Part shown: positions 36,344 through 62,692 of the stretch, in pieces | Position numbering within the stretch: the first letter of the stretch is position 1 | How the letters are laid out: each line of letters opens with the position of its first letter | DNA from: Paramoeba atlantica | Lineage: Eukaryota > Protista > Discosea | Assembly: GCA_977017575.1 (NCBI GenBank) | Contig: CDRNVI010000140.1 | Span: forward strand, 248,001 to 312,000 | Reading direction: 5' to 3' | Length of the DNA stretch: 64,000 bases | Notes under the pieces: generated by a model | Seen by the model: the letters and a program-made list of their open reading frames with translations, nothing else | Told to the model about the DNA's origin: nothing | Database searches by the model: none | Program-made: the position numbers and the translations under genes

Positions 36344-38232
36344 ATGTACCTGTTGTGTCTCCTTCTGATGTATTCCTTCGACTGGACTTCTATTGGGGGC
36401 TTGGCTTTTTGTTCGGATTTCCCAACTCGTCCTCATTATCGTACTTCTCCTCCCACAAACGAAACATGTTTTGAATACGAACTCGAAAATGAATGTTCTT
36501 CTCTTTTGAACGATGTCAATGTAAACTCAACAATCCAACACATTTTGTTTGATTCAATCAGTTTGAATGTTTCTGATGTTCGATTGGTTCCATCGGGTTG
36601 TCGAAGACCATTTTTGTGGTTTGTTTGTGGATTGGTGTTTCCTCGTTGTCCTTCTGAAACAATAGAAGAACAACTTTGTCGACAAGTTGAAGGATGTCAT
36701 CAAGTCAACGAAATATGTGAACCATTTGGTCTTTCTTTTGATTGTTCTTTTCCTGCCTTTTTGGATGGGGATGAAGAAGATGAAGAATGTTCAACAAGAA
36801 TTTCAAAAGAAATTGAAGAAGCAACAGAAAATGGAATCAAAGTGGAAACATGTTTGGGAGAACAAAAAGAAACAATTGAATGTTGTCCAGATCCATTTAT
36901 TGTTGATTTTGAAGGAGAATGTGTTGTTGAATGCCCACAATATGCGTATGGGAAACGATATGAAACAAACGCTCAGATTGCTCTGTTTGTGTTGTTATGG
37001 GTTGGAGTTGTGAGTGTATTTATTGGACAGTTTCCTCTTTTTATGATGTCTTTGAATACAAGGTGAGTGTTTTTTATGTTTTTTAAATCTCAATTTTAGT
37101 GAAATCAACTGAAGACAATCAGAAAACTATTCTTTCCATCATTAACAATTGAAAATTAACTTGGTTTCTCTTTGAAAGGTATCCAGCTTATGTTTTGCTG
37201 TTTGCGATCATTGGAAGCCTTGTCTTTGAATTATTTTTTTCATTTGCAATGTTTGCTGGTTTGAATTTTTCTTTCCAACAATCTCATTTTTACAAATTTT
37301 AAATAAAATCCAAATTTTCAGGTGGATTTGAAGAATATTTATGTGGAAATGAAGAAAGTTATCTTGCTGCATTAAATCATTTTGGAAGATCTCGAGTTGC
37401 AGGAGTTCAAATGAGTTTTTGGATGTTGTTTACAAACATAACATTATCATTGTGGGCAGTCCAATCTTTTAATACCTTTTGTTTTATTGCAAGGTACTTT
37501 TTCTTTTCTTTTTTTATCTTTATTTTGAGATTTCTATTGATTTCTTTATTCAGGGTTAAGTGGAAGTTTTTTGAACGATTTGTTGATGGTTCAATTTCCA
37601 AATGGATTCAAATTTGTTTTGTTGTGCCATGTTTTTTCATCCCTTTTGCTCTCTTTCTCTTTTGTGTGATTTACTTTTTCACACACAACTCTTCTTCTGA
37701 CAAACTTATTCTTACTGTCGCATCATTTACTTTTGCTGCATTTCCCTTCAGAAATTCTCCTCTTAATAGTGTATTTCGAGTTTATGGTGCGATTTGCACA
37801 TGTATAGTCGCTCTGTTCGTTGTTTTATCAATCATATTAGTTTTGGGGATTAATTATCGAATTGCTTTCCTTCAATGGAGAGCAATGTTTATCCAATTTT
37901 ACTTCTTAATCGGTTGTGGGATTTATATTTGGTACTATCTGGGGAGTGATCCTGATAGAGTGATACAAAATTATATTAAGTGTGTTGGGTCTCATCCACG
38001 AATTGATCCACCTCCTTGTCAACGAAATCCAAGTGAAGGACGAATTTTGATTTTTTTTACCTATTTGGTAACCTTTTTGTTTCCAGTTCTAGTCAGCTTT
38101 GTTGTTACTTTTACGAATCCTCTTGTGTCTGATTGGTGGAAGGAACTCATTTTCAAACGTAAAATTGTTCGAAGTATGTCTTCCTTGGATACTTTAATGT
38201 CGGACCGATCACCTCGCTCACTTCGTGAATAA
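36344..38232 (+). CDS. Smoothened/Frizzled-like class F receptor, copy 1
   Basis: Signal peptide, 10-Cys CRD, CCPDPF..CVVECP linker, NTR/YPA after TM1, 7 hydrophobic segments, ECL3 YIKC..PPCQ; 4 exons in phase. Confidence 0.85.
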
Positions 38233-38405
38233 AAAAGGTGGGGGGGGGTGAGTGAACATAACTTATTCACACAAACTTGGGAGAATAATTATTTTATTCA
38301 AACAATCTTTCAAAAAGATGTTCTCAAACCCAACAGAGAGAATCAAAGAGGTATTGAATGCCTCACGATTTCCTCCATTACATCAATTATTTTAAATAAA
38401 CAAGC

Positions 38406-40303
38406 TCAACTCTCTATTTTCGCAGAGGATTGCTTCTGTGAATGAACAGAATCTAATTCTGCTGCACTTCGGATTGCCTTGTGCCGAAAAATCAACTCTT
38501 TCCACCACTCAAATACAAGTGGATTCGTCCAAAAAACAACAAAGCTGACTACAACTGGAAACAAAAATATTACCAAAAAGGATAAAAAAAGCAGAATTCG
38601 TCCTTCACTTAGATTTCGGTGGCAAGGAGGTGGATCAATTCGTGGATGAGACCCAACACACTCAATGTAATTGAACAAAGAATCATCGCCATGATCACCG
38701 ATTAGAAGGAACCAGATAAAAAACCCATAAACAATTAAGAAGTAAACTTGGATAAAAAGACCTCTCCATTGAAAGAGAGCGATTCGATAATTGATCTTCA
38801 AGAGGGTTACAATGGAGAGAAGAAAGAAAAGAACGACAACACTAACGCAAATGAAGCTGTAAATTCGAAACACATCACGGAAAGGATTCACCCCAAATGC
38901 TGCAAAAGTAAATGGTGCTGGTGCAAGATAAAGTTTGTCAGAAGAAGAGTTGTGTGTGAAAAAGAATATCACATTAAAGAGGAAAAACGCAAAAGGAATA
39001 AAAAAGCATGGCACAATAAAACAAATTTGAATCCAGGTAGAAACTGGCTCCTCCACAAATTGCCCAAAAAATTTCCACTTTGTTCTGATCACAATTTCGA
39101 AAATAAGAAAGAAGTCAATTCAAAAAAATTAATTATGAGTGAAATGAAAGAAAGTACCTTGCCAACACACAAAATGTATTGAAGGATTGAACAATCCAGA
39201 GTGACACTACAATTTGTATGAATAATGTATAAAAGCTTATTTGAACTCCTGCAACTCGAGATCTTCCAAAACGGGCAAGGGCAGTGAAATAATTTTCTTC
39301 ATTCCCACAGAAATATTCTTCAAATCCACCTGAAAAATGGAAAGGAATTATTCTCAAACTTTTAATTTCACAAAGAGATTGTAAAAATGGGATTGTTGGA
39401 AAGAAAAATACAAACCAGCAAATGTTGCAAAAGAGAGAAATAATTCGCCCATTAGGTTTGTGATGAGAGCAAGCAACAAAACATAAGCTGGATATCTTTC
39501 AAAGAAAATAAAAAAATAAACCAAGGTGATTTCATTAAAATTGATATTATTTAAAAACATAAAAAAAACACTCACCTTGTATTCAAAGACATCATAAAAA
39601 GAGGAAACTGTCCAATAAATACACTCACAACTCCAACCCATAACGATACAAACAAAGTAATCTGAACACTTGTTTCATATCGTTTCCCATACCAATATTG
39701 TGGACATTCAACAACACACTCTCCTTCAAAATCAACAATAAATGGATCTGGACAACATTCAATCGTTTCTTTTTGTTCTCCCAAACATGTTTCCACTTTG
39801 ATTCCATTTTCTGTTGCTTCTTCAATTTCTTTTGAAATTCTTGTTGAACATTCCTCATCTTCTTCTTCCTCAAAAGGTGGAAAAAGACAATCAATTGAAA
39901 GACCAAATGGTTCACATCTTTCATTGACTTGATGACATCCTTCAACTTGTCGACAAAATTGTTCTTCGATTGTTTCAGAAGGACAACGAGGAAATATCAA
40001 TCCACAAACAAACCACAACAATGGTCTTCGACAATCTGATGGAAACATTCGAATATCAGAAACATTCAAACTAATTACATCAAACAAAATATGTTGAATT
40101 GTTGAGTTGACATTGACATCGTTCAAAAGAGAAGAACATTCGTTTTCGAGTTTGTATTCAAAACATGTTTCGTTTGCGTTTGTGGGAGGAGAAGGGGATG
40201 GTGGTGATGGGATTGGAAGGTTTGGTTGTGGTTGTTTCAAAATTGAACAAAAACAAAAGGTTCCAAAGTTGAAAGAACACAACACAATAAACAACAACTG
40301 CAT
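38406..40303 (-). CDS. Smoothened/Frizzled-like receptor, copy 2
   Basis: Same 4-exon structure; MQLLFIVLCS N-terminus; ends ..QKQSSAKIES. Confidence 0.85.
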
Positions 40304-40866
40304 CCCCTTTCTCCAATGAACGCTCGAAAGAACAAACAGCGAGAGAGAACGCCAGAAAACAGGAGAACAACGAGGAAAAGAGGGAAAGTACAACCAGACA
40401 GTCTCTTTTCGGTGTCTGTAAGGCGGACAATGATTTTTCTTTTTGAGTGAGTTGGTTTGGGAGAGAGGAATTGCAGACACTGCCAAGAAAGAGTGACGAA
40501 CAACGAGAGAGAGAGAACGCCAGAGAACGAAGAACAAAAAAGGGTGCTGACGATGAGCGAGTTATCCTTTATTAAGGAGGTTGTCCGGCGAGGAAAGATG
40601 TCCCCTCATTTTAGGGACACCATCCTTTCTTCTTTTTTTTGGGTGGATGGGTTTGGAGAGAGAGGAAAGATTCTTGTTTTGAGTGTCAATTTCAAAAGTA
40701 AAATTGTTCGAAATATGTCAGACTCTCACCTCGCTCACTTCTTGATTCAAAAAGGTGGGGTGATAATTATTTTATTCAAACAATCAACAGACAACAGAGA
40801 GAATCAAAGAGGTATTGAATGCCTCATGATTTCCTCCATTGCATTAGTTATTTTAAATAAACAAGC

Positions 40867-42830
40867 TCAACTCTCTATTTTCGCAGAGGATTGCTTCTGT
40901 GAATGAACAAAATCTAATTCTGATGCACTTCGAATTGCCTTATGTCGAAAAATCAACTCTTTCCACCACCCAAATACAAGTGGATTCGTCCAAAAAACAA
41001 CAATACTGATTACAACTGGAAACAAAAATATTACCAAAAAGGTCAAAAAATACATAATTCGTCCTTCACTTGGATTTCGTTGACAAGGAGGTGGATCAAT
41101 TCGTGGATGAGACCCAACACACTCAATATAATTTGGCAAAGAATCATCGCCTTCAGTGATTAGAAAGAACCAGATAAAAAACCCATAAACAATTAAGTAG
41201 TAAACTTGGATAAAAAGACCTCTCCATTGAAGGAAAGCAATTCGATAGTTGATCTTCAAGAGGATTCCAATGGAAAAAAGAAAGAAAAGAACAATAAGAC
41301 TAAGACAAATGAAGGTGTAAATTCGAAACACATCTTTGAAAGGATTCACCCCAAATGCTGCAAAAGCAAATGGCACTGGTCCGAGATAAAGTTTGTCAGA
41401 AGAAGAGTTGTGAGTGAAAAAGAATATCACATTAAAGAGGAAAAACGCAAAAGGAATAAAAAAGCATGGCACAACAAAACAAATTTGAGTCCAGGTAGAA
41501 ACTGAATCCCCCACAAATTGCCCAAAAAATTTCCACTTTGTTCTGATCACAATTTCAAAAATAAGAAAGAAGTCAATTAAAAAAAATTAATTATGAATAA
41601 AATGAAAGAAAAAGTACCTTGCCAACATACAAAATGTATTGAAGGATTGAACAACCCAGAGTGACACTAAAATGTGGATGAATAATATATAAAAGCTTAG
41701 TTGAATTCCTGCAACTCGAGATCTTCCAAAATGGTCAAGTGCAGTGAAATAATTTTCTTCATTCCCACAGAAATATTCTTCAAATCCACCTGAAAAATGG
41801 AAAAGGATTATTCTCAAACTTTTAATTTCACAAAGAGATTGTTGGAAAGAAAAATACAAACCAGCAAACATTGCAAAAGAGAGAAAAAATTCGGTCATTA
41901 GGTTTGTGATGAGAGCAAGCAACAAAACATAAGCTGGATATCTTTCAAAGAAAATAAAAAATAAACCAAGTTAATTTTCAATTGTTAATGATGAGTGTAG
42001 AGGAGTGTGGAGGAGTGGTGAATAGTTTTAATGGATTGTCTGATTTCAAGTTGATTTGATTTCATTAAAATTGAGATTTAAAAACATAAAAAAAACACTC
42101 ACCTTGTATTCAAAGACATCATAAAAAGAGGAAACTGTCCAATAAATACACTCACAACTCCAACCCATAACAACACAAACAGAGCAATCTGAGCACTTGT
42201 TTCATATCGTTTCCCATACCAATATTGTGGGCATTCAACAACACATTCTCCTTCAAAATCAACAATAAATGGATCTGGACAACATTCAATCGTTTCTTTT
42301 TGTTCTCCCAAACATGTTTCCACTTTGATTCCGTTTTCTGTTGCTTCTTCAATTTCTTTTGAAATTCTTGTTGAACATTCCTCATCTTCTTCTTCCTCAA
42401 AAGGTGGAAAAAGACAATCAATCGAAAGACCAAATGGTTCACATCTTTCGTTGACTTGATGACATCCTTCAACTTGTCGACAAAATTGTTCTTCAATTGT
42501 TTCAGAAGGACAACGAGGAAACATCAATCCACAAACAAACCACAATAATGGTCTTCGACAATCTGATGGAATCATTCGAATATCAGAAACATTCAAACTA
42601 ATTACATCAAACAAAATGTGTTGAATTGTTGAGTTGACATTGACATCGTTCAAAAGAGAAGAACATTCGTTTTCGAGTTCGTATTCAAAACATGTTTCGT
42701 TTGCGTTTGTTGGAGGAGAAGGGGATGGTGGTGATGGGATTGGAAGGTTTGGTTGTGGTTGTTTCAAAATTGAACAAAAACAAAAGGTTCCAAAGTTGAA
42801 AGAACACAACACAATAAACAGCAACTGCAT
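40867..42830 (-). CDS. Smoothened/Frizzled-like receptor, copy 3
   Basis: ORFs 42099..43043 (CRD exon) and 40867..41550 (TM4-7 exon); splice sites conserved. Confidence 0.85.
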
Positions 42831-43462
42831 CCCCTTTCTCCAATGAACGCTCGAAAGAACGAGCAGTGAGAGAGAACGCCAGAAAGAAAGAAAGAACGAG
42901 CAGAAAACAGGGAAGGGAAAGAGGGAAAGCACGACCAGGCGGGTCTCTTTTTGATGTTTGCTTTTCGGTGTCTGTAAGGTGGACAATGATTCTTCTTCTT
43001 TGAGTGAGTTGGTTTGGGAGAGAGGAATTGGAAACACTGCCAAGAAAGAGGGACCAAACAGCGAGAGAGAGAACGCCAGAGAACGAAGAACAAAAAAGGG
43101 TGCTGAGGAGGGGTTATCCTTTAAGGAGGTTGTCCGGCGAGGAAAGATGTCCTTTTAGGGACACCATCCTTTCTTCTTTTTTTTGGGTGGATGGGTTTGG
43201 AGAGAGAGGAAAGATTCTTGTTTTGAGTGTCATTTTCAAAAGTAAAATTGTTTGAAATATGTCAGACTCTCTATTCTGGACCAATCACTTCGCTCACTTC
43301 ATGATTCAAAAAGGTGGGGGGGTGAGTGAACATAACTTAATCACACAAACTTGGGAGAATAATTATTTTATTCAAACAATCAACAGACAACAGAGAGAAT
43401 CAAAGAGGTATTGAATGCCTCATGATTTCCTCCATTGCATTAGTTATTTTAAATAAACAAGC

Positions 43463-45436
43463 TCAACTCTCTATTTTCGCAGAGGATTGCTTCTGTGAAT
43501 GAACAGAATCTAATTCTGATGCACTTCGAATTGCCTTATGTCGAAAAATCAACTCTTTCCACCACCCAAATACAAGTGGATTCGTCCAAAAAACAACAAT
43601 ACTGATCACAACTGGAAACAAAAATATTACCAAAAAGGATAAAAAATACATAATTCGTCCTTCACTTGGATTTCGTTGACAAGGAGGTGGATCAATTCGT
43701 GGATGAGACCCAACACACTCAATATAATTGAGCAAAGATTGATCGCCATCAGTATTCAGAAAGAACCAGACAAAAAACCCATAAACAATTAAGAAGTAAA
43801 CTTGGATAAAAAGACCTCTCCATTGAAGGAGAGCGATTCGATAATTGATCTTCAAAAGGATTCCAACAGAGAAAAGAAAGAAAAGAACAATAAGACTAAG
43901 ACAAATGAAGCTGTAAATTCGAAACACATCTTTGAAAGGATTCACCCCAAATGCTGCAAAAGCAAATGGCACTGGGACGAGATAAAGTTTGTCAGAAGAA
44001 GAGTTGTGAGTGAAAAAGAATATCACATTAAAGAGGAAAAACGCAAAAGGAATAAAAAAGCATGGCACAACAAAACAAATTTGAATCCATTTAGAAACTG
44101 AATCCCCCACAAATTGCCCAAAAAATTTCCACTTTGTTCTGATCACAATTTCGAAAATAAGAAAGAAGTCAAGCCAAAAAAATTAATTATGAATGAAATT
44201 AAAGAAAAAGTACCTTGCCAACACACAAAATGTATTGAAGGATTGAACAATCCAGAGCGACACTACAATGTGTACGAATAATGTATAAAAACTCATTTGA
44301 ATTCCTGCAACTTGAGATCTTCCAAAATGGTCAAGTGCAGTGAAATAATTTTCTTCATTCCCACAGAAATATTCTTCAAATCCACCTGAAAAATGGAAAA
44401 GAATTATTCTCAAACTTTTAATTTCACAAAGAGATTGTAAAAATGGGATTGTTGGAAAGAAAAATACAAACCAGCAAATGTTGCAAAAGGGAGAAATAAT
44501 TCAGCCATTAGGTTTGCGATGAGAGCAAGCAACAAAACATAAGCTGGATAACTTTCAAAGAAAATAAAAAATAAACCAAGTTAATTTTCAATTGTTAATG
44601 ATGAGTGTGGAGGAGTGTGGAGAAGTGGTGAATAGTTTTAATGGATTGTCTGATTTCAAGTTGATTTCATTAAAATTGATATTATTTAAAAACATAAAAA
44701 ACACTCACCTTGTATTCAAAGACATCATAAAAAGAGGAAACTGTCCAATAAATACACTCACAACTCCAACCCATAACAACACAAACAAAGTAATCTGAGC
44801 ACTTGTTTCATATTGTTCTCCATACGCATATTGTGGACATTCAACAACACACTCTCCTTCAAAATCAACAATAAATGGATCTGGACAACATTCAATTGTT
44901 TCTTTTTGTTCTCCCAAACATGTTTCCACTTTGATTCCGTTTTCTGTTGCTTCTTCAATTTCTTTTGAAATTCTTGTTGAACATTCCTCATCTTCTTCAT
45001 CCTCAAAAGATGGAAAAAGACAACCAATTGAAAGACCAAATGGTTCACATCTTTCGTTGACTTGATGACATCCTTCAACTTGTCGACAAAATTGTTCTTC
45101 TATTGTTTCAGAAGGACAACGAGGAAACACCAATCCACAAACAAACCACAATAATGGTCTTCGACAACCCGATGGAATCATTCGAACATCAGAAACATTC
45201 AAACTGATTGAATCAAACAAAATGTGTTGGATTGTTGAGTTTACACCGACATCGTTCAAAAGAGAAGAACATTCGTTTTCGAGTTTGTATTCAAAACATG
45301 TTTCGTTTGCGTTTGTTGGAGGAGAAGGGGATGGTGGTGATGGGATTGGAAGGTTTGGTTGTGGTTGTTTCAAAATTGAACAAAAACAAAAGGTTCCAAA
45401 GTTGAAAGAACACAACACAATAAACAACAATTGCAT
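43463..45436 (-). CDS. Smoothened/Frizzled-like receptor, copy 4
   Basis: ORFs 44705..45436 and 43463..44146; splice sites conserved. Confidence 0.85.
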
Positions 45437-46312: not shown

Positions 46313-48285
46313 TCAACTCTCTATTTTCGCGGATTGCTTCTGTGAATGAACAGAATCTAATTCTGATGCACTTCGAATTGCCTTATGTCGAAAAATCAAC
46401 TCTTTCCACCACTCAAATACAAGTGGATTCGTCCAAAAAACAACAATACTGATCACAACTGGAAACAAAAATATGATCAAAAAGGTCAAAAAATACATAA
46501 TTCGTCCTTCACTTGGATTTTGTTGGCAAGGAGGTGGATCAATTCGTGGATGAGACCCAACACACTCAATGTAATTGAGCAAAGATGGGTCCCCTTCATC
46601 ACCAATTAAAAGGAACCAGATAAAAAACCCAAAGGTAATTAAGTAGTAAACTTGGATAAAAAGACCTCTCCATTGAAGGAAAGCGATTCGATGATCAATC
46701 TTCAAGAGGGTTACAATGGAGAAAAAAACAAAAAGAACAACAACACTAACGCAAATGAAGGTGTAAATTCGAAACACATCACTGAAAGGATTCACCCCAA
46801 ATGCTGCAAAAGTAAATGGTGTTGATGCAAGATAAAGTTTGTCAGAAGAAGAGTTGTGTGTGAAAAAGAATATCACATTAAAGAGGAAAAATGCAAAAGG
46901 AATAAAAAAGCATGGCACAACAAAACAAATTTGAGTCCAGGTAGAAACTGAATCCCCCACAAATTGCCCAAAAAATTTCCACTTTGTCCTGATCACAATT
47001 TAAGAAGTCAATTAAAAAAATATTTTCCTGATAAATGAAAGAAAAAGTACCTTGCCAACACACAAAATGTATTGAAGGAATGAACAACCCAGAGTGACAC
47101 TAAAATGTGGATGAATAATGTATAAAAGCTTAGTTGAATTCCTGCAATTCGAGATCTTCCAAAATGGTCAAGTGCAGTGAAATAATTTTCTTCATTCCCA
47201 CAGAAATATTCTTCAAATCCACCTGAAAAATGGAAAGGAATTATTCTCAAACTTTTAATTTCACAAAGAGATTGTAAAAATGGGATTGTTGGAAAGAAAA
47301 TTACAAACCAGCAAATGTTGCAAAAGAGACAAAAAATTCGGTCATTAGGTTTGTGATGAGAGCAAGCAACAAAACATAAGCTGGATAACTTTCAAAGAAA
47401 ATAAAAAATAAACCAAGTTAATTTTCAATTGTTAATGATGAGTGTAGAGGAGTGTGGAGGAGTGTGGAGGAGTGGTGAATAGTTTTAATGGATTGTCTGA
47501 TTTCAAGTTGATTTGATTTCATTAAAATTGATATTATTTAAAAACATAAAAAACACTCACCTTGTATTCAAAGACATCATAAAAAGAGGAAACTGTCCAA
47601 TAAATACACTCACAACTCCAACCCATAACAACACAAACAAAGTAATCTGAGCACTTGTTTCATATCGTTTCCCATACCAATATTGTGGGCATTCAACAAC
47701 ACACTCTCCTTCAAAATCAACAATAAATGGATCTGGACAACATTCAATTGTTTCTTTTTGTTCTCCCAAACATGTTTCCACTTTGATTCCATTTTCTGTT
47801 GCTTCTTCAATTTCTTTTGAAATTCTTGTTGAACATTCTTCATCTTCTTCTTCCTCAAAAGATGGAAAAAGACAATCAATTGAAACATCGAATGGTTCAC
47901 ATCTTTCATTGACTTGGTGACATCCTTCAACTTGTCGACAAAATTGTTCTTCGATTGTTTCAGAAGGACAACGAGGAAATATCAATCCACAAACAAACCA
48001 CAATAATGGTCTTCGACAATCTGATGGAACCAATCGAATATCAGAAACATTCAAACTGATTACATCAAACAAAATGTGTTGAATTGTTGAGTTGACATTG
48101 ACATCGTTCAAAAGAGAAGAACATTCGTTTTCGAGTTTGTATTCAAAACATGTTTCGTTTGCGTTTGTTGGAGGAGAAGGGGATGGTGGTGATGGGATTG
48201 GAAGGTTTGGTTGTGGTTGTTTCAAAATTGAACACAAACAAAAGGTTCCAAAGTTTAAAGAACACAACACAAACAACAATTGCAT
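46313..48285 (-). CDS. Smoothened/Frizzled-like receptor, copy 5
   Basis: ORFs 47557..48480 and 46313..46996. Confidence 0.85.
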
Positions 48286-48879: not shown

Positions 48880-50838
48880 TCAACTCTCTATTTTCGCAGA
48901 GGATTGCTTCTGTGAATGAACAGAATCTAATTCTGATGCACCTTGAATTGCCTTATGTCGAAAAATCAACTCTTTCCACCACTCAAATACAAGTGGATTC
49001 GTCCAAAAAATAACAATACTGATCACAACTGGAAACAAAAATATGATCAAAAAGGATAAAAAATACATAATTCGTCCTTCACTTGGATTTTGTTGGCAAG
49101 GAGGTGGATCAATTTGTGGATGAGACCCAACACACTCAATGTAATTGAGCAAAGATGGGTCCCCTTCATCACCAATTAAAAGGAACCAGATAAAAAACCC
49201 AAAGGTAATTAAGTAGTAAACTTGGATAAAAAGACCTCTCCATTGAAGGAAAGCGATTCGATGATCAATCTTCAAGAGGGTTACAATGGAGAAAAAAACA
49301 AAAAGAACAACAACACTAACGCAAATGAAGGTGTAAATTCGAAACACGTCACTGAAAGGATTTACCCCAAATGCTGTAAAAGTAAATGGTGTTGGTGCAA
49401 GATAAAGTTTGTCAGAAGAAGAGTTGTGTGTGAAAAAGAATATCACATTAAAGAGGAAAAATGCAAAAGGAATAAAAAAGCATGGCACAACAAAACAAAT
49501 TTGAGTCCAGGTAGAAACTGAATCCCCCACAAATTGCCCAAAAAATTTCCACTTTGTTCTGATTACAATTTAAGAAGTCAATTAAAAAAATATTTTCCTG
49601 ATAAATGAAAGAAAAAGTACCTTGCCAACACACAAAATGTATTGAAGGAATGAACAACCCAGAGCGACACTACAATGTGGTTGGATAATGTATAAAAACT
49701 CATTTGAATTCCTGCAACTCGAGATCTTCCAAAATGGTCAAGTGCAGTGAAATAATTTTCTTCATTTCCACAGAAATATTCTTCAAATCCACCTGAAAAA
49801 TGGAAAGGAATTATTCTCAAACTTTTAATTTCACAAAGAGATTGCTGGAAAGAAAAATACAAACCAGCAAACATTGCAAAAGAGAGAAATAATTCAGTGA
49901 TTAGGGTTGTGATGAGAGCAAGCAACAAAACATAAGCTGGATATCTTTCAAAGAAAATAAAAAATAAACCAAGTTAATTTTCAATTGTTAATGATGAGTG
50001 TAGAGGAGTGTGGAGAAGTGGTGAATAGTTTTAATGGATTGTCTGATTTCAAGTTGATTTCATTAAAATTGATATTATTTAAAAACATAAAAAACACTCA
50101 CCTTGTATTCAAAGACATCATAAAAAGAGGAAACTGTCCAATAAATACACTCACAACTCCAACCCATAACAACACAAACAAAGTAATCTGAGCACTTGTT
50201 TCATATCGTTTCCCATACCAATATTGTGGACATTCAACAACACACTCTCCTTCAAAATCAACAATAAATGGATCTGGACAACATTCAATTGTTTCTTTTT
50301 GTTCTCCCAAACATGTTTCCACTTTGATTCCGTTTTCTGTTGCTTCTTCAATTTCTTTTGAAATTCTTGTTGAACATTCCTCATCTTCTTCTTCCTCAAA
50401 AGATGGAAAAAGACAATCAATTGAAAGACCAAATGGTTCACATCTTTCGTTGACTTGATGACATCCTTCAACTTGTCGACAAAATTGTTCTTCTATTGTT
50501 TCAGAAGGACAACGAGGAAACACCAATCCACAAACAAACCACAACAATGGTCTTCGACAATCTGATGGAATCATTCGAACATCAGAAACATTCAAACTAA
50601 TTACATCAAACAAAATGTGTTGGATTGTTGAGTTTACATGAACGCTGTTCAAAAGAGAAGAACATTCGTTTTCGAGTTTGTATTCAAAACATGTTTCGTT
50701 TGCGTTTGTGGGAGGAGAAGGGGATGGTGGTGATGGGGTTGGAAGGTTTGGGATGGGCTTTCTGAGGTTTGTTGTGGTAATAAAGTTGAGGTTGAAGAAG
50801 AGGAGGACAACCAACTCAAACAACAAACGAACAGACAT
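48880..50838 (-). CDS. Smoothened/Frizzled-like receptor, copy 6 (chimeric N-terminus)
   Basis: ORFs 50098..51021 and 48880..49530; MSVRLLFELV signal peptide on a KAI..SAKIES-type TM exon. Confidence 0.85.
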
Positions 50839-51382: not shown

Positions 51383-53356
51383 TCATTGTATCCCTTCCTT
51401 TTCTTTCGAAACAGAATTTGAGGTTCCAGTCTCCAAGTCTGACATATTTCGAACAATTTTACGTTTGAAAATCAATTCTTTCCACCACCCAGACACAAGC
51501 GGATTCGTCCAAGAAACAACAAAGCTGATTGCAACTGGAAACAAAAATAGGATCAAAAAGGTTAAAAAAACCAAAACTCGTCCTTCACTTGGATTTCGTT
51601 GACAAGGAGGTGGATCAATTCGTGGATGAGACCCAACACACTCAATGTAATTTTGTATTACTCTCTCAGATTCACTCCCCAGATAGAACCAGAGCAAAAC
51701 CCCACAAGCAATTAAGAAGTAAAATTGGAGAATCATTGCTCTCCATTGAAGGAAAATAATTCGATAATTAATCCCCAAAAGTAGTATGATTGATAAAACA
51801 ACAAACAGAGCGACTGTACATGTGCAAATCGCTCCATAAACTCGAGGAACGTCATCAATAGGAGAATTCTCGAAGGGAAAAGCTGAAAATATAAATGGTG
51901 ATAAATAAAGAAGAAGTTTGTCAGAAGAAGAGTTGTGTGTGAAAAAGTAAATCACACAAAAGAGAAAGAGAGCAAAAGGGACGAAAAAGCATGGCACAAC
52001 AAAACAAATTTGAATCCATTTAGAAACTGAACCATCTACGAATCGTTCAAAAAACTTCCACTTTACCCTGAATAAAGAAATCAAAAGAAATCTCAAAAGA
52101 AAGAGAGGAACAAATCAAGAGATAAAAAAGAAAAGAAAAAGTACCTTGCAATAAAACAAAATGTATTAAAGGAGAGAACTGCCCACAATGATAATGTTGT
52201 GTTTGAGAGCAACACCCAAAAACTCATTTGAATTCCTGCAACTCGAGATCTCCCAAAACGATTTAATGCAATAAAATAATTTTCTTCATTTCCACATAAA
52301 TATTCTTCAAATCCACCTGAAATTTGGATTTTATTTAAAATTTGTAAAAATGAGATTGTTGGAAAGAAAAATACAAACCAGCAAACATTGCAAATGAAAA
52401 AAATATTTCTTGGAGAAGAACTACAATGAGAGCAAGCAACAAAACATAAGCTGGATATCTTTCAAAGAAAATAAAAAAATAAACCAAGTTAATTTTCAAT
52501 TGTTAATGATGAGTGTAGAGGAGTGTGGAGGAGTGTGGAGAAGTGGTGAATAGTTTTAATGGATTGTCTGATTTCAAGTTGATTTCATTAAAATTGATAT
52601 TATTTAAAAACATAAAAAAAACACTCACCTTGTATTCAAAGACATCATAAAAAGAGGAAACTGTCCAATAAATACACTCACAACTCCAACCCATAACAAT
52701 ACAAACAAAGTAATCTGAACACTTGTTTCATATCGTTTCCCATACCAATATTGTGGACATTCAACAACACATTCTCCTTCAAAATCAACAATAAATGGAT
52801 CTGGACAACATTCAATTGTTTCTTTTTGTTCTCCCAAACACGTTTCCACTTTGATTCCATTTTCTGTTGCTTCTTCAATTTCTTTTGAAATTCTTGTTGA
52901 ACATTCTTCATCTTCTTCATCCTCAAAAGGTGGAAAAAGACAATCAATTGAAAGACCAAATGGTTCACATATTTCGTTAACTTGATAACATCCTTCAACT
53001 TGTCGACAAAATTGTTCTTCTATTGTTTCAGAAGGACAACGAGGAAACACCAATCCACAAACAAACCACAATAATGGTCTTCGACAATCTGATGGAATCA
53101 TTCGAATATCAGAAACATTCAAACTAATTACATCAAACAAAATGTGTTGAATTGTTGAGTTGACATTGACATCGTTCAAAAGAGAAGAACATTCGTTTTC
53201 GAGTTCGTATTCAAAACATGTTTCGTTTGCGTTTGTTGGAGGAGAAGGGGATGGTGGTGATGGGATTGGAAGGTTTGGTTGTGGTTGTTTCAAAATTGAA
53301 CAAAAACAAAAGGTTCCAAAGTTGAAAGAACACAACACAATAAACAGCAACTGCAT
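51383..53356 (-). CDS. Smoothened/Frizzled-like receptor, copy 7
   Basis: ORFs 52625..53584 and 51383..52096; C-terminus SVSKEKEGIQ shared with copy 9. Confidence 0.85.
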
Positions 53357-53873
53357 CCCCTTTCTCCAATGAACGCTCGAAAGAACGAGCAGTGAGAGAG
53401 AACGCCAGAAAACAGGAGAACAACGAGAGAAAGAGGGAAAGCACAACCAGACGGTCTCTTTTCGGTGTCTGAAAAGCGATTTTTCTTTTTTGAGTGAGTT
53501 GGTTTGGGAGAGAGGAATTGGAAACACTGCCAAGAAAGAGGGACCGAACAGCGAGAGAGAGAAATGCCAGAGAACGAAGAACAAAAAAGGGTGCTGACGA
53601 TAAAAAGGGTGACCGTTTGCGGTGGTCGCTTCTTTTGGGTTTTCCGGAAAAAAAGCGCTATTTATTTAGAGGCTAAAAAACCGCCCGGCCATTATTTGAG
53701 TGCCCGAAAAAAAACCTTCACTTTCCTTTTCGTTGTTTCGTTGTGCCACGCCCAACCCTTCTCTCAACTGTTCAACTTTAGCGCAGAGGTACGCCTGAAG
53801 CTTCGAAGAACGACGATCAGTGCTTCACTTTTTGTCTTCTGGTTTTGAGAAGAGGGGATTCACCTTGGTGAGT

Positions 53874-55834
53874 ATGTCTGTTCGTTTGTTGTTTGAGTTG
53901 GTTGTTGTCCTTCTCTTCTTCAACCTCAACTTTATTACCACAACAAACCTCAGAAAACCCATCCCAAACCTTCCAATCCCATCACCACCATCCCCTTCTC
54001 CTCCAACAAACACAAACGAAACATGTTTTGAATACAAACTCGAAAACGAATGTTCTTCTCTTTTGAACGATGTCAATGTCAACTCAACAATCCAACACAT
54101 TTTGTTTGATTCAATTAGTTTGAATGTTTCTGATATTCGAATGATTTCATCAGATTGTCGAAGACCATTATTGTGGTTTGTTTGTGGATTGATGTTTCCT
54201 CGTTGTCCTTCTGAAACAATCGAAGAACAATTTTGTCGACAAGTTGAAGGATGTTATCAAGTCAACGAAAGATGTGAACCATTTGGTCTTTCAATTGATT
54301 GTCTTTTTCCATCTTTTGAGGAAGAAGAAGATGAAGAATGTTCAACAAGAATTTCAAAAGAAATTGAAGAAGCAACAGAAAATGGAATCAAAGTGGAAAC
54401 ATGTTTGGGAGAACAAAAAGAAACAATTGAATGTTGTCCAGATCCATTTATTGTTGATTTTGAAGGAGAATGTGTTGTTGAATGTCCACAATATTGGTAT
54501 GGGAAACGATACGAAACAAGTGTTCAGATTACTTTGTTTGTATTGTTATGGGTTGGAGTTGTGAGTGTATTTATTGGACAGTTTCCTCTTTTTATGATGT
54601 CTTTGAATACAAGGTGAGTGTTTTTTATGTTTTTAAATAATATCAATTTTAATGAAATCAAATGAAATCAGACAATTCATTAAAACTATTCACCACTCCT
54701 CCACACTCCTATCCTCATCATTAACAATTGAAAATTAACTTGGTTTATTTTTTATTTTCTTTGAAAGATATCCAGCTTCTGTTCTGTTACTCACGCTCAC
54801 CGCAACCCTAATGACCGAATTTTTTCTCTCTTTTGTGGTGTTTGCTGGTTTGTAATTTTCTTTCCAACAATCTCATTTTTACAAATTTTAAATAAAATCC
54901 AAATATCAGGTGGAACTGAAGAATATTTATGTGGAAATGAAGAAAGTTATCTTGTTGCATTAAATCGTTTTGGGAGATCTCGAGTTGCAGGAATTCAAAT
55001 GAGTTTTTGGATAATGTTTATAAACATAACATTATCATTGTGGGCAGTCCAATCTTTTAATACCTTTTGTTTTATTGCAAGGTACTTTTTCTTTTCTTTT
55101 TTATCTCTTGATTTGTTCCTCTCTTTCTTTTGAGATTTCTTTTGATTTCTTTATTCAGGGTAAAGTGGAAGTTTTTTGAACGATTCATAGATGGTTCAGT
55201 TTCCAAATGGATTCAAATTTGTTTTGTTGTGCCATGCTTTTTCGTCCCTTTTGCTCTCTTTCTCTTTTGTGTGATTTACTTTTTCACACACAACTCTTCT
55301 TCTGACAAACTTCTTGTTGTGCCTTCGCCCTTTCTGGTGGTACCATTTCCCTTCCGTCGAGATACTTCTCTTGATGACATATTTCGAGTTTATGGGACGA
55401 TTTGCATATGTACAGTCACCCTGTTCATTGTTTTATCAATCATATTAGTTTTTGGGATTAGTTATCAAATTGCTTTCCTTCAATGGAGAGCAATGTTTAT
55501 CCAATTTTACTTCTTAATTACTTGTGGAATTTTTTTCTGGTACTATGTGGGGAGTGATCCTGATAGAGTGATACCAAATTACATTGAGTGTGTTGGGTCT
55601 CATCCACGAATTGATCCACCTCCTTGTCAACGAAATCCAACTGGCGGACGAATTATGAATTTGTTAACCTATTTGGCAACCTTTTTATTTCCAGTTATAA
55701 TCAGCTTTGTTGTTACTTTTACGAATCCTCTTGTGTCTGGGTGGTGGAAAGAACTCATTTTCAAACGTAAAATTGTTCGAAGTATGTCTACCTTGGAGCC
55801 TGGAACCTCAATGAAAGATAAGGGGGAAACATAA
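53874..55834 (+). CDS. Smoothened/Frizzled-like receptor, copy 8
   Basis: ORFs 53820..54617 and 55130..55834; 4 exons in phase. Confidence 0.85.
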
Positions 55835-55885
55835 CTCGTTTACAAATTTATTTTTATGATTAGATAAAAAATTGATAAAAAAACA

Positions 55886-56008: not shown

Positions 56009-56281
56009 TTTTAGCTCCACAACAGGCAAATATTGCAAACATAAATTGACAAAAGAAAGAAAACTGTGATTGAATGAAAAGAAAATGGGTCAGAACTGTC
56101 GAAAGTGTTGGACATCAAAATATCAATGTCTCAACCAAAGAGACGGTGCTAATTTTAGGCGACTAAATCGCTAACTTCCTATTTTTGCTTGTTTTGTTGT
56201 GGGAAAAAGAAACTCTTTCTCTTTGCTGCTTCGCTTTGTTTTTGTCCCATTTGTCTCCAGGGCGAGAACCTTTGGCAAGTG

Positions 56282-58256
56282 ATGTCTGTTTGTTTGTTGT
56301 TTGAGTTTGTTGTTGTCCTCCTCTTCTTCAACCTCAACTTTATTACCACAACAAACCTCAGAAAACCCATCCCAAACCTTCCAATCCCATCACCACCATC
56401 CCCTTCTCCTCCCACAAACGCAAACGAAACATGTTTTGAATACAAACTCGAAAACGAATGTTCTTCTCTTTTGGGTGATATCGATATGAACTCAACAACC
56501 CAATACATTTTGTTTGATTCAATCAGTTTGAATGTTTCTGATATTCGATTGGTTCCATCAGATTGTCGAAGACCATTATTGTGGTTTGTTTGTGGATTGG
56601 TGTTTCCTCGTTGTCCTTCTGAAACAATAGAAGAACAACTTTGCCGACAAGTTGAAGGATGTTATCAAGTTAACGAAATATGTGAATCATTTGGTCTTTC
56701 AATTGATTGTCTTTTTCCACCCTTTGAGGAAGAAGAAGATGAAGAATGTTCAACAAGAATTTCAAAAGAAATTGAAGAAGCAACAGAAAATGGAATCAAA
56801 GTGGAAACATGTTTGGGAGAACAAAAAGAAACAATTGAATGTTGTCCAGATCCATTTATTGTTGATTTTGAAGGAGAATGTGTTGTTGAATGTCCACAAT
56901 ATTGGTATGGAGAACGATATGAAACAAGTGTTCAGATCACTTTGTTTGTATTGTTATGGGTTGGAGTTGTGAGTGTGTTTATTGGACAGTTTCCTCTTTT
57001 TATGATGTCTTTGAATACAAGGTGAGTGTTTTTTTATGTTTTTAAATAATATCAATTTTAATGAAATCAACTTGAAATCAGACAATCCATTAAAACTACT
57101 CACCACTTCTCCATACTCCTCCACACTCATCATTAACAATTGAAAATTAACTTGGTTTAATTTTTTATTTTCTTTGAAAGATATCCAGCTTGTGTTTTGG
57201 TCATTAATAGCATTACAATCCTTCTCCAAGAAATATTTTTTTCATTTGCAATGTTTGCTGGTTTGTAATTTTCTTTCCAACAATCTCATTTTTACAAATT
57301 TTAAATAAAATCCAAATATCAGGTGGAACTGAAGAATATTTCTGTGGGAATGAAGAAAATTATCTTGTTGCATTAAATCATTTTGGAAGATCTCGAGTTG
57401 CAGGAATTCAAATGAGTTTTTGGATATTGTTTACAAACATAACATTATCACTGTGGATAGTTCTCTCCTTTAATACATTTTGTTTTATTGCAAGGTACTT
57501 TTTCTTTTCTTTTTTATCTCTTGATTTGTTCCTCTCTTTCTTTTGAGATTTCTTTTGATTTCTTTATTCAGGGTAAAGTGGAAGTTTTTTGAACGATTCG
57601 TAGATGGTTCAGTTTCTAAATGGATTCAAATTTGTTTTGTTGTGCCATGCTTTTTCGTCCCTTTTGCTCTCTTTCTCTTTTGTGTGATTTATTTTTTCAC
57701 ACACAACTCTTCTTCTGACAAACTTCTTCTCTCTCCATCACCATTTCTATTTGCAGCTTTTCCTTTTTATATTCCTCCTCTTGATGACATACTTCGAGTT
57801 TATGGAGCGATTTGCACATGTATAGTCGCTCTGTTCGTTATTTTATCAATCATGTTCGTTTTTGGGATTAATTATCGAATTATTTTCCTTCAATGGAGAG
57901 CAATTTTTATCCAATTTTACTTTTTATTTACTTGTGGGATTTTTCTTTGGTTCTATCTGGGGAGTGAATCTGATAAAGTAATACAAAATTACATTGAGTG
58001 TGTTGGGTCTCATCCACGAATTGATCCACCTCCTTGTCAACGAAATCCAAGTGAAGGACGAATTATGTTTTTGTTAACCTTTTTGATCATATTTTTGTTT
58101 CCAGTTGTAATCAGCATTGTTGTTACTTTTACAAATCCTCTTGTGTCTGGGTGGTGGAAAGAATTGATTTTCAAACGTAAAATTGTTCGAAATATGTCAG
58201 ACTTGGATTCTGGAACCTCAAATTCTGTTTCGAAAGAAAAGGAAGGGATACAATGA
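56282..58256 (+). CDS. Smoothened/Frizzled-like receptor, copy 9
   Basis: ORFs 56189..57025 and 57543..58256. Confidence 0.85.
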
Positions 58257-58591
58257 ACATATTTATTTTTTCAATTTGACCAATCTTTTAGAGAAATCAA
58301 TTTGAACCTGGTTAAATTTTAGCTCCACAACAGGCAAATATTGCAAACATAAATTGACAAAAGAAAGAGAAAACTATGATTGAATGAAAAGAAAATGGGT
58401 CAGAACTGTCGAAAGTGTTGGACATCAAAATATCAATGTCTCAACCAAAGAGACGGTGCTAATTTTAGGCGACTAAATCGTTCACTTCCTATTTTTGCTT
58501 GTTTTGTTGTGGGAAAAAGAAACTCTTTCTCTTTGTTGCTTCGCTTTGTTTTTGTCCCATTTGTCTCCAGGGCGAGAACCTTTGGCAAGTG

Positions 58592-60430
58592 ATGTCTGTT
58601 TGTTTGTTGTTTGAGTTTGTTGTTGTCCTCCTCTTCTTCAACCTCAACTTTATTACCACAACAAACCTCAGAAAACCCATCCCAAACCTTCCAATCCCAT
58701 CACCACCATCCCCTTCTCCTCCAACAAACGCAAACGAAACATGTTTTGAATACAAACTCGAAAACGAATGTTCTTCTCTTTTGAACGATGTCAATGTCAA
58801 CTCAACAATTCAACACATTTTGTTTGATTCAATCAGTTTGAATGTTTCTGATATTCGATTGGTTCCATCGGGTTGTCGAAGACCATTATTGTGGTTTGTT
58901 TGTGGATTGGTGTTTCCTCGTTGTCCTTCTGAAACAATTGAAGAACAATTTTGTCGACAAGTTGAAGGATGTCATCAAGTCAACGAAAGATGTGAACCAT
59001 TCGATGTTTCTTTTGATTGTCTTTTTCCACCTTTTGAAGAAGAAGAAGATGAAGAATGTTCAACAAGAATTTCAAAAGAAATTGAAGAAGCAACAGAAAA
59101 CGGAATCAAAGTGGAAACGTGTTTGGGAGAACAAAAAGAAACAATTGAATGTTGTCCAGATCCATTTATTGTTGATTTTGAAGGAGAGTGTGTTGTTGAA
59201 TGTCCACAATATTGGTATGGGGAACGATATGAAAGAGCGATTCGAATCACTTTGTTTATCTTGCTTTGGATTGGTTTTGTCCTCTTTTTTGTTGGACAAA
59301 TTCCTCTCTTTGCAGTCTCAATTACTCAAAGGTTTGTCATTTGAACTCTTTTTTTAGTTTCATTCTTTAAAAGTTTGTTGGAAAAAAAAAGGTATCCGAA
59401 TTATGTGTTGCCTCTCTCCGTTTTGTCCAATCTCATGCTTGAAGTGTTTTTCTGTTTTTCAGTTTTTGCTGGTAAGTTACTTTTTTTTCTCTTTTTCTGA
59501 TTTCAAATTTAAAGAATGGGATTTTTTTGATTTCTCTTTTCATTTTTCTTTTAGGAGGACCAGAAGAGTATGTTTGTGGAAATGATGAAAATTACTTTTC
59601 TGCTTTGGATTCTTTTGGAAGATCACGAGTGGCTGGAATTCAAATGAGCTTTTTTGTCTTCTTTTTAGCTTTGACGTATTCTTTATGGGTCATCAATTCT
59701 TTCTCAACTTTTTGTTTTATTGCCAAGTTCTTTTCTTTTTTTTTTTAAATTCTGTAATCCAACATCTCATTTTTGAAATGGAAGGGTAAAATATAATCTC
59801 TTTGGGAGATTTGTAACTCATCCAGTTCCCCGCATCTTTGAATACGGCCTTTTGGCAACCTCCTTCATTTTTTCTCTGACAATGTTTCTTTTTTTTGTTA
59901 TTTACTTTTTCACTTCTGAGACACATGTAATTCCGGTTTCGATTGTTTTTGCTGCACTGCCATTGACGAATCCTCTTTTCAATGTTTATCAATCTTTTAT
60001 CACGATTTGTATTGGTTTAATTGCAATATTTTCGTTTGGTACAGACATCCTAATCGCCAAAATTAATTATCGACTTCTTTATTTTCAATGGAGGGGTGTG
60101 TTTGTCCAGTGTTTTCTTGTCGTCCTTGTTGCATTTACTATTTGGATTCTTTTCTTTCAGGAACAAGAGTCAATTATTGAAGAGTATATTTATTGTGTAT
60201 CCTCTCACCCTCAAAGTGATCCACCTCCTTGTGAAAAGTCCTTCCGATCAGATCAAGTGATAACAACCTTGGCTCTATTTCTGGTTTTCCTCTTTCCGGT
60301 GGTTGTGAGTCTGATCGTGTACTTTTCCAAAGTACATGTGATTGCATGGTGGAAGGAACTCATTTTCAATCATCGTGTAGTCCAGGATCTTTCAAGTTTG
60401 GAGTCTCTTCTTTCTGCCACCACCTCGTGA
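58592..60430 (+). CDS. Smoothened/Frizzled-like receptor, copy 10 (divergent 7TM, array-type CRD)
   Basis: ORFs 58499..59344 and 59852..60430; the same four-exon layout splices in phase (R/YPNY.., G/GPEEYVCGND.., K/VKYNLF..). Confidence 0.8.
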
Positions 60431-60838
60431 GAGTGACTGTTGGAGATAGAAGTTGGAAGTTTTGATGATCTGGGAGGGACAAATATCTAAATCTGAACAG
60501 CAAAAGAATTTACATTGAAAAAATTTTGTTTGGGAGAGGACTCTTTGTGAGAGGATCTCTAATGATGATAGGTTATGATGGAACTCTTGTTCAAATTTGT
60601 ATTTGTCAAGTTTGAAAAACTTAAATGGAGAAAGAGAAAATAACTCTTGAATTGTAAAAAGAAATAGCCAAAACTTCCTCGTTTTTGTTTAAAGTCCTGT
60701 TCTCCATCTCGGCTCAATGTTCTCATTTCAGTCATCAAAGAGACTGGAGCTTATTTTAGGTTTCTAAATTCTTTCCTTTCTTTGTTCGTCTTTTGGGAAG
60801 AGGGGGCTCACCTTTCTTGAAGCGTTCATTGGTGAGTT

Positions 60839-62692
60839 ATGTCTGTTCGTTTGTTGTTTGAGTTGGTTGTTGTCTTCTTCTTCTTCAACCTCAACTTTAT
60901 TACCACAACAAACCTCAGAAAACCCACCCCAAACCTTCCAATCCCATCACCACCCCCTTTTCCTCCATGTTTTGAATACGAACTCGAAAACGAATGTTCT
61001 TCTCTTTTGAACGATGTCAATGTAAACTCAACAATTCAACACATTTTGTTTGATGTAATCAGTTTGAATGTTTCTGATATTCGATTGGTTCCATCAGATT
61101 GTCGAAGACCATTCTTGTGGTTTGTTTGTGGATTGGTGTTTCCTCGTTGTCCTTCTGAAACAATAGAAGAACAATTTTGTCGACAAGTTGAAGGATGTCA
61201 TCAAGTCAACGAAAGATGTGAACCATTTGGTCTTTCAATTGATTGTCTTTTTCCATCTTTTGAGGATGAAGAAGATGAGGAATGTTCGACAAGAATTTCA
61301 AAAGAAATTGAAGAAGCAACAGAAAATGGAATCAAAGTGGAAACATGTTTGGGAGAACAAAAAGAAACAATTGAATGTTGTCCAGATCCATTTATTGTTG
61401 ATTTTGAAGGAGAATGTGTTGTTGAATGTCCACAATATTCGTATGGGAAACGATATGAAACAAGTGTTCAGATTACTTTGTTTGTGTTGTTATGGGTTGG
61501 AGTTGTGAGTGTATTTATTGGACAGTTCCCACTTTTTATGATGTCTTTGAATACAAGGTGAGTGTTTTTATGTTTTTAAATATCAATGAAAATCACCTTG
61601 GTTTATTTTTTATTTTTTTTGAAAGATATCCAGCTTCTGTTTTGTTGCTTGCTCTCATCGCAAACCTAATGACCGAATTTTTTCTCTCTTTTGTGGTGTT
61701 TGCTGGTTTGTATTTTTCTTTCCAACAATCTCATTTTTACAAATTTTAAATAAAATCCAAATTTTCAGGTGGAACTGAAGAATATTTATGTGGAAATGAA
61801 GAAAATTATCTTGTTGCATTAAATCATTTTGGAAGATCTCGAGTTGCAGGAATTCAAATGAGTTTTTGGATATTGTTTACAAACATAACATTATCATTGT
61901 GGGCAGTCCAATCTTTTAATACCTTTTGTTTTATTGCAAGGTACTTTTTCTTTTCTTTTTTATCTCTTGATTTGTTCCTCTCTTTCTTTTGAGATTTCTT
62001 TATTCAGGGCAAAGTGGAAGTTTTTTGAACGATTTGTACATGGTTCAGTTTCTAAATGGATTCAAATTTGTTTTGTTGTGCCATGCTTTTTCGTCCCTTT
62101 TGCTCTCTTTCTCTTTTGTGTGATTTATTTTTTCACACACAACTCTTCTTCTGACAAACTTCTTGTTGTGCCTTCGCCCTTTCTGGTGATACCATTTCCC
62201 TTCCATCGAGATACTTCTCTTGATGACATATTTCGAGTTTATGGGACGATTTGCATATGTACAGTCGCTCTGTTCATTGTTTTATCAATCATATTAGTTT
62301 TGGGGATTAATTATCGAATTGCTTTCCTTCAATGGAGAGCAATTTTTGTCCAATTTTACTTCTTAATTGCTTGTGGAATTTTTTTCTGGTACTATCTGGG
62401 GAGTGAACCTGAGAGAGCGATACCAAATTACATTGAGTGTGTTGGGTCTCATCCACGAATTGATCCACCTCCTTGTCAACGAAATCCAAGTGAAGGACGA
62501 GTTTTGGTTTTTTTAACCTATTTGGCAACCTTTTTGTTTCCGGTTGTAATCAGCTTTGTTGTTACTTTTACGAATCCTCTTGTGTCTGGGTGGTGGAAAG
62601 AATTCATTTTCAAACGGAAAATTGTTCGAAATATGTCAGACTTGGAGACTGGAACCTCAAATTCTGCATCGAAAGAAAAGGGGGAAACATAA
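60839..62692 (+). CDS. Smoothened/Frizzled-like receptor, copy 11
   Basis: ORFs 60839..61561 and 61934..62692; shortened Pro-rich stalk. Confidence 0.85.

Follow-up and report, generated by a model that had tools for sequence, protein, structure and literature searches.

Putative class-F-like receptor genes in a tandem array of Paramoeba atlantica share a gene-converted ectodomain and carry an old, diversified seven-transmembrane region

Frizzled-type receptors predate animals, and neither Wnt nor Hedgehog is known from Amoebozoa. Frizzled- and Smoothened-like receptors of amoebozoans have been described, with cysteine-rich domains (CRDs), lineage-specific amplification, sub-threshold Pfam matches and a missing KTxxxW motif (PMC10445921; PMC12716839). 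In the Fsl proteins of Dictyostelium, Pfam and SMART Frizzled domains often stay below threshold and KTxxxW is mostly absent (PMC10445921). The words “tandem” and “positive selection” occur nowhere in the main text of PMC10445921, and full-text literature searches returned no treatment of gene conversion, or of selection acting on loops, for receptors of the Frizzled type. Here, we analysed a 64,000-nucleotide stretch of the Paramoeba atlantica genome (assembly GCA_977017575.1, contig CDRNVI010000140.1, positions 248,001 to 312,000 of the forward strand; hereafter the window), in which 11 paralogous receptor genes, C1 to C11, are located at 36.3-62.7 kb. With the amoebozoan Fsl (FslA-Q and Fsc of Dictyostelium, and the expansions in Acanthamoeba and Physarum) this array has in common the Fz-type CRD, a seven-transmembrane (7TM) core and lineage-specific amplification, whereas its clade is without the cysteine pair that links transmembrane helix (TM) 3 to extracellular loop (ECL) 2. 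The array fits the published description of Fsl, of which it is a candidate member.

Animal Frizzled paralogues differ in their CRDs, the CRD being the main ligand site; in the array, in contrast, the CRD belongs to the constant part. Clustered protocadherins, in work ascribed to Noonan et al. in 2004, are said to be an example of region-restricted gene conversion in a tandem family. Islands of divergence under region-restricted interlocus gene conversion are known from theory (PMC3924837), from GOT1 paralogues (PMC3728101) and from V1R clusters (PMC2644715). As in the known conversion families, one part of the array genes evolves in concert and others diverge, a pattern taken there to reflect selection against conversion; mosaic copies and uneven tree depth are shared as well. 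The array differs from them in that homogenisation falls on a presumed ligand-binding class-F ectodomain, with the 7TM core and the extracellular loops protected, and in that the pattern occurs twice in one protist genome. The explanation that we favour, to which as a whole we assign a probability of roughly 0.6, is that of a class-F-like array with a converted ectodomain and an old, diversifying 7TM region.

The 11 genes are ordered as one on the plus strand, six on the minus and four on the plus; inversions are therefore implied by these three orientation blocks. DNA alignment of the units resolved each copy into four exons, with GT..AG borders at 33 of 33 introns (58-172 nt across the copies) and with the reading frame intact in 11 of 11 copies, and the proteins are 545-558 amino acids (aa) long. 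Exon 1 reaches from the signal peptide, through a proline-rich stretch, a domain with 10 cysteines and a cysteine-rich linker, to TM1; TM2 is coded by exon 2, ECL1 and TM3 by exon 3, and TM4 to TM7, helix 8 (H8) and the tail by exon 4. Exons were joined only for alignment and codon analysis, and searches and folds took exon references or database proteins. A pseudogene array was ruled out by the intact open reading frames (ORFs) and splice sites. An assembly artefact is unlikely, as the 3' half of each copy is unique and the stretch is covered by DNA contigs of an independent run. Spliced C3 is collinear with the transcriptome protein P0073 (MMETSP, 548 aa) over residues 48-534, with 26% identity (expect value, E, 3e-41). 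Furthermore, a contig of a probable RNA run from the same organism has the joint 42103|41941, by which exactly the 161 nt of C3 intron 1 are skipped and which is not present in the DNA run; past this joint, the contig runs on into exon-3 sequence of a C8/C11-like copy. At least one array copy appears to be transcribed.

In their 3' halves the copies represent two deep 7TM types, A (C2-C6) and B (C1, C7, C8, C9 and C11), together with the outlier C10. Synonymous divergence between A and B (dS, Nei-Gojobori) was 0.11 in the CRD, 0.09 in the linker and 0.10 in TM1, and rose to 0.37 in exon 2 and 0.67 in exon 3; for most of exon 4 it was 0.6 to >1.5, with 1.15 in TM5 and 1.9 in H8. From averaged counts, the proportion of synonymous differences (pS) between the types was 0.099 in exon 1 vs 0.443 in exons 2-4 (Fisher p=6.5e-11). 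Exon 1 is matched in uniformity by intron 1, where the p-distance is 0.03-0.055; introns 2-3 show 0.2-0.39. The tree of exon 1 is star-like and without the A/B split; exons 3-4 split A|B with 94-100% support. In approximately unbiased (AU) tests, the 5' and 3' halves each reject the full topology of the other (p 2e-8 and 0.0015). The 5' data do not reject an A|B split taken by itself (AU p=0.12), for which reason we base the argument on tree depth and on the rejection of the full 3' topology. Patterns of informative sites in exon 1 are mosaic and independent of 7TM type. The homogeneous tract, which includes intron 1 besides the code for mature ectodomain and TM1, is bounded by diverged sequence on both sides; upstream of it lie two or three unrelated promoter/signal-peptide types that are mismatched with the 7TM types, C6 joining a B-type signal peptide to an A-type body and C7 the reverse. 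From low dS, uniform intron 1, the conflict of trees and the bounded tract, we conclude that interlocus gene conversion keeps this tract of ~830 bp near-identical, which is more than protein constraint and not simple unequal crossing-over. The homogenisation of the ectodomain, seen in protein by the first-pass annotation of this DNA, thus holds at the DNA level, both at synonymous sites and in intron 1.

Identity of the ectodomain could in principle stem from purifying selection on the protein only, acting after an ancient duplication and with no homogenisation; indeed, the linker motif and the 10 CRD cysteines are kept in 40% identical paralogues and in remote homologues. Such selection does not account, however, for synonymous divergence in exon 1 that is 4-10 times below that of exons 2-4, for an equally uniform intron 1, for a star-like exon 1 tree conflicting with the 3' tree, or for an array-type ectodomain in C10 on a 7TM whose nearest relative, P0014, resembles the array far less in its ectodomain. 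Purifying selection as the only reason for the identity was rejected on dS and intron 1, and we hold it to be highly improbable.

Within the homogenised tract, the linker is additionally under strong purifying selection. It has no amino-acid changes and six codons with synonymous-only variation; its motif, VETC..CCP..F...ECVV.CPQY, is kept in the ~40% identical paralogues and in remote homologues; and the chance of 0/51 variable linker columns at the rate of the adjacent CRD is ~3e-7. The 51-residue block (STRISKEIEE...VVECPQY, alignment columns 160-210) was identical in 11 of 11 copies in the protein alignment, just as first reported.

Two islands of low divergence were found in exon 4 as well. 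The first one, FTHNSSSDKL (ECL2a), has a dS of 0.07 between A and B; the second, NYIECVGSHPRIDPPPCQRNPSEGR (ECL3b; 41059-41133 in C3), has a dS of 0.07 vs a pS of 0.42 in each flank (p ~0.015). In C10, the second island is retained as a protein motif on diverged DNA, and the nucleotide identity of the other ten copies is therefore not demanded by the protein. Conversion, as these homogenised islands show, reaches the 3' half and persists there only in some segments. C10 itself has an ectodomain of array type up to just before TM1, and beyond this point its dS to the other copies is 0.8 to >2. Its 7TM is 65% identical to that of P0014, a paralogue on another contig, and 37-40% identical to those of other array copies, and the ectodomain of P0014 is only about 60-70% like that of the array. 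All this agrees with conversion of the C10 ectodomain by neighbouring copies.

The mosaic was repeated in a second tandem array of the same assembly, L002:1087-12028 (ENA ERZ24900291, ctg2963l), with five complete copies and one partial copy on a single strand. It is ~40% identical to the main array and has an extra intron between intracellular loop (ICL) 3 and TM6. Its p-distance is 0.025-0.08 in the ectodomain and then 0.2-0.35 from TM1 on, and ECL2 and the TM6 extension are again rich in indels. Two more paralogues are located on L001 (ctg3569l), at L001:3973-6043 and L001:6415-8239. The former has a C10-like 7TM (P0014) and an exon 1 in two frames (P0006), due to either a frameshift or a sequence error. 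It should also be mentioned that a gene with a match to Pfam WLS-like_TM (PF06664, Wntless-like) lies at L001:14286-15164, ~6-8 kb from these Frizzled-like paralogues, possibly by coincidence.

The Frizzled-type identity proposed at first pass was borne out by a class-F-like fold, modelled for P0073, but not by the Frizzled 7TM family model, PF01534, which never matched, nor by KTxxxW, which is absent. All 10 CRD cysteines are invariant or present in at least 90% of rows in an alignment of the array with 12 paralogues. The exon translation has a real match to Pfam Fz (PF01392) at 20.8 bits (E 6e-4), short of the gathering score of 32.1, and three full-length homologues match it at 21-25 bits. 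PF01534 matched no exon piece at E up to 0.1, and four full-length homologues also gave no match when E was relaxed to 10. Profile hidden Markov models of exon 4 and exon 1 retrieved no FZD or SMO among PDB sequences, only chance matches. After TM7, all copies read TNPLV(S/F)xWWKE, and C10 SKVHVIAWWKE, with no Lys-Thr and with a different spacing. Word-index searches returned only 13 ENA ORF fragments with exon 1 and only P0073 itself with full-length P0073, and an exhaustive profile search with exon 4 returned 63 relatives, some of them full-length with the same architecture. The exon 1 model has almost exclusively Fz-type CRDs as its top Foldseek matches, albeit weak ones (E 0.1-5). The AlphaFold (AF2) model of P0073 has a mean predicted local distance difference test (pLDDT) score of 82.6 and a predicted template modelling (pTM) score of 0.77, and shows CRD and linker, seven helices, the hairpin of ECL2 and a TM6 that is 44 residues long (404-447). 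Ranks 1-26 of its Foldseek matches are all SMO/FZD; the first 33 matches of VIA-align are SMO/FZD as well (Z 26.8-20.6), and the best other G-protein-coupled receptor (GPCR) has Z 20.4. Full-length SMO aligns to the model over 437 residues, from residue 28, CRD to helix 8. Metazoan SMO (Z 26.8) and FZD7 (Z 25.2) are thus its best structural matches, and share with it a long extracellular TM6 helix, an ECL2 hairpin and a disulfide-bearing ECL3; they differ in that identity is only ~10-12%, PF01534 is undetected, TNPLVxxWW stands in place of KTxxxW and the array has no ECL2 cysteine. Mapped onto this model, the array stretch that we had termed ECL3a is the extracellular TM6 extension, and ECL2b is the hairpin. 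We accordingly model the array proteins as class-F-like: the signal peptide is followed by an Fz-type CRD with 10 cysteines, the cysteine-rich linker, a 7TM in which TM6 has a long extension, and helix 8.

The TM3-ECL2 cysteine pair forms the canonical GPCR disulfide, which tethers ECL2. The array clade and its close paralogues (P0014-P0018) are without both the TM3-top and the ECL2 cysteines (in C3, e.g., exon 3 at 41618-41789 and ECL2 at 41332-41388), and ten more remote homologues keep both.

Initially, CRD and linker were described as homogenised and ECL2 and ECL3 as hypervariable. The share of variable columns per region, computed among the 10 array-type copies, was 91% (20/22) in ECL2b, 90% (9/10) in ECL3a, 78% in the C-tail, 74% in TM6, 73% in TM5, 65% in TM7, 58% in TM2, 28% in TM4, 25% (28/110) in the CRD and 0% (0/51) in the linker. 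The contrast between linker and loops therefore stands, ECL2b and ECL3a being the most variable of all regions, but these are not the sole variable ones and the CRD is itself variable in a quarter of its columns. All ECL2 strings quoted after SSSDKL were found as written and differ between copies, SSSDKL is missing from C10, and the variants at the TM6/ECL3 junction (GSDPDRV, IGDHGDDS, ITEGDDS, NTDGDQS, IGDEGDPS, GSESERV and QEQESI) were all recovered, with one indel column there; indels occur in both the ECL2 and the ECL3 stretches. The impression that every copy differs is partly due to the two deep 7TM subtypes and the outlier C10.

Goldman-Yang codon site models (M0, M1a, M2a, M7, M8 and M8a; F3x4) were fitted on maximum-likelihood trees in our own implementation. 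In exon 4 (207 codons), the likelihood-ratio test (LRT) of M2a vs M1a gave 30.3 for all 11 sequences and 33.8 once C10 was removed, with omega2 ~4.4 for ~10-12% of codons; site-wise dN/dS by M7 vs M8, the check put forward by the first-pass annotation, favoured M8 with an LRT of 37.7, and M8 vs M8a gave 32.5. Overall, 10-14% of codons belong to the positive class, with an omega (dN/dS) of ~4. When four segments were each given a tree of their own, the signal was retained in ECL2b-TM5 (LRT 13.9, p=0.001), TM6-ECL3a (LRT 7.8, p=0.02) and ECL3b-TM7-H8 (LRT 7.8, p=0.02), and was gone in ICL2-TM4. A weaker signal was found in exons 2-3, in TM2 (LRT 10.1), where columns 263, 266 and 274 were flagged, and a marginal one in exon 1 (LRT 6.0). 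In 24 simulations under M1a the top LRT was 8.3 vs 33.4 for the real data analysed alike, fixed branch-length proportions being used in the simulations and in the matched data run. M8 flagged 14 columns, namely 388, 389, 390, 393, 401 and 406 in ECL2, 413 and 430 in TM5, 455 in TM6, 468, 471 and 474 in the TM6 extension, 502 in TM7 and 529 in H8. Nine of them fall in the 32 codons of ECL2b and ECL3a vs five in the other 175 (odds ratio 13, p=2e-5). The 7TM sequence outside the islands is old, and about a tenth of the exon-4 codons fit omega ~4; most of these codons belong to the hairpin of ECL2 or to the TM6 extension on the extracellular side. Site models and the clustering of flagged sites support diversifying selection on the exposed face of the receptor, exposure being read from topology only.

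Several points weigh against the favoured explanation. The elevation of dN/dS expected for ECL2 and ECL3 was found in the placing of most flagged sites but not in regional averages, which are below 1 in ECL2b (0.6-0.7) and ~1, on few sites, in ECL3a. Diversification extends to TM2, TM5-TM7 and the tail; flagged sites lie in TM2, TM5, TM6, TM7 and H8 too, some of them cytoplasmic (430 and 529), and site 401 abuts an indel. Recombination inflates the LRTs of site models, and it is rife in the array; partitioning reduces this risk and does not remove it. The codon models are of our own implementation, their check being the 24 null simulations only. As for the fold, exon 1 folded alone gave a poor model (pLDDT 62.7, with the linker <50), and P0073 is a homologue of only 26% identity and not an array copy. 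The run with the spliced contig (X1) is only guessed to be RNA, and this contig comes from one copy.

Some of these observations would equally be expected from conversion combined with neutral drift, by which weakly constrained loops and lipid-facing helix positions have diverged through drift and indels since old duplications, conversion halts where identity is already too low and positive selection plays no part. The region-average omega <1 in ECL2b, the indels in both loops, the high variability across TM5-TM7, the tail and the signal peptide, and the established effect of recombination on LRTs all fit it. Drift does not, however, readily explain a class with omega ~4 fitted by both M2a and M8 and surviving segment-specific trees, the distance between the data and the top null simulation, or the 13-fold enrichment of flagged sites in two extracellular stretches. 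Moreover, conversion reaches the short exon 4 islands amid 40% synonymous divergence, so that low identity alone is no barrier. We therefore consider drift unlikely, though it deserves to be kept in mind.

Under the favoured explanation, conversion may act along the whole gene, its tracts surviving only where functionally distinct segments are not erased, and selection would protect such segments of the 7TM from conversion. The outcome would be a repertoire with one ectodomain “handle” shared for a common ligand class, lipid or partner, and with receptors that differ at the extracellular mouth and in the core of the 7TM bundle, the presumed seat of specificity or signalling. Loss of the TM3-ECL2 disulfide pair would free ECL2 to vary. 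The extracellular face of the Smoothened 7TM helps to line a small-molecule site. The variable residues of the array may line a 7TM pocket, as in the chemoreceptor-like system suggested at first pass. It is possible, if somewhat doubtful, that the array forms a “constant ectodomain, variable 7TM” repertoire, with conversion maintaining a shared CRD-linker in at least two arrays, selection diversifying the 7TM mouth (the TM6 extension and an ECL2 hairpin free of the disulfide) and specificity residing in a Smoothened-like 7TM site, not in the CRD. Such a use of class F receptors would be pre-metazoan, and would resemble, by way of conversion, the receptor clusters with variable and constant parts.

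Alternatively, the variable face could be driven by antagonism or recognition, directed at a virus, a bacterial effector or toxin, or self/non-self among amoebae, and not by small-molecule sensing. Exposed loops under positive selection, a tandemly expanded family and mosaic recombination among copies fit this equally, but selected or variable sites within the bundle (263/266 in TM2 and 455/460 in TM6) fit a pocket better than a surface epitope; we deem recognition improbable. Returning to the favoured explanation, the domain that binds the ligand in animal Frizzleds is held constant in the array, and the extracellular face of the 7TM diversifies. If true, this would provide a natural panel of one ectodomain with many 7TM variants, with which to ask what sets class F specificity and what the ancestral class F ligands were. 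It would also make a clean, twice-replicated case of conversion and selection dividing one gene into homogenised and protected segments.

Individual copies are located in the window as follows. C1 (549 aa, type B) occupies 36344..38232 on the plus strand, with exons at 36344-37062, 37179-37258, 37322-37493 and 37554-38232, the linker block at 36791-36943, ECL2b at 37708-37770 and ECL3a at 37942-37968. On the minus strand, C2 (552 aa, type A; 38406..40303) has exons at 40303-39576, 39495-39416, 39329-39158 and 39084-38406, its linker being at 39695-39847, ECL2b at 38874-38930 and ECL3a at 38673-38702. C3 (551 aa, type A), at 40867..42830 on the same strand, consists of exons 42830-42103, 41941-41862, 41789-41618 and 41542-40867, with the linker at 42222-42374, ECL2b at 41332-41388 and ECL3a at 41134-41160. 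Also on the minus strand, C4 (551 aa, type A; 43463..45436) has its linker at 44828-44980, ECL2b at 43928-43984 and ECL3a at 43730-43756, and in C5 (550 aa, type A; 46313..48285) these are placed at 47680-47832, 46778-46834 and 46577-46606, correspondingly. The two mosaics close the minus-strand block: C6 (555 aa, type A 7TM with B-type signal peptide; 48880..50838), with linker 50221-50373, ECL2b 49348-49404 and ECL3a 49147-49176, and C7 (554 aa, type B 7TM with A-type signal peptide; 51383..53356), with linker 52748-52900, ECL2b 51851-51913 and ECL3a 51653-51679. The four remaining copies are on the plus strand. C8 (555 aa, type B) spans 53874..55834 (linker 54342-54494, ECL2b 55313-55378, ECL3a 55550-55576) and C9 (558 aa, type B) spans 56282..58256 (linker 56750-56902, ECL2b 57726-57788, ECL3a 57960-57986). 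C10 (545 aa), the copy with the divergent 7TM, lies at 58592..60430 (linker 59060-59212, ECL2b 59927-59983, ECL3a 60155-60181), and C11 (551 aa, type B with an A-like exon 2) at 60839..62692 (linker 61286-61438, ECL2b 62162-62227, ECL3a 62399-62425).

C1 and C2 are arranged tail-to-tail, with 173 bp between their stop codons (38232-38406), and C7 and C8 head-to-head, 517 bp apart (53356-53874). Intron 1 of C3-C9 (e.g. 41942-42102) contains a short repeat of CACTCCTCCA type, the number of which varies between copies, and large deletions of intron 1 were seen in C2, C10 and C11. Each exon 1 also has a lysine-rich ORF of 106-114 aa in an alternative frame of the same strand, at 39625-39945 (-), 42152-42496 (-), 54244-54564 (+) and equivalent positions; as genes these were set aside, since they probably arise incidentally from GAA/AAG-rich codons that homogenisation keeps alike. 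Upstream of the array, in low-complexity surroundings, an 854-aa ORF at 5322-7886 (+) resembles, by eye and not by a family scan, a reverse transcriptase that ends in an RNase H-like part, perhaps that of a non-LTR (long terminal repeat) retroelement.

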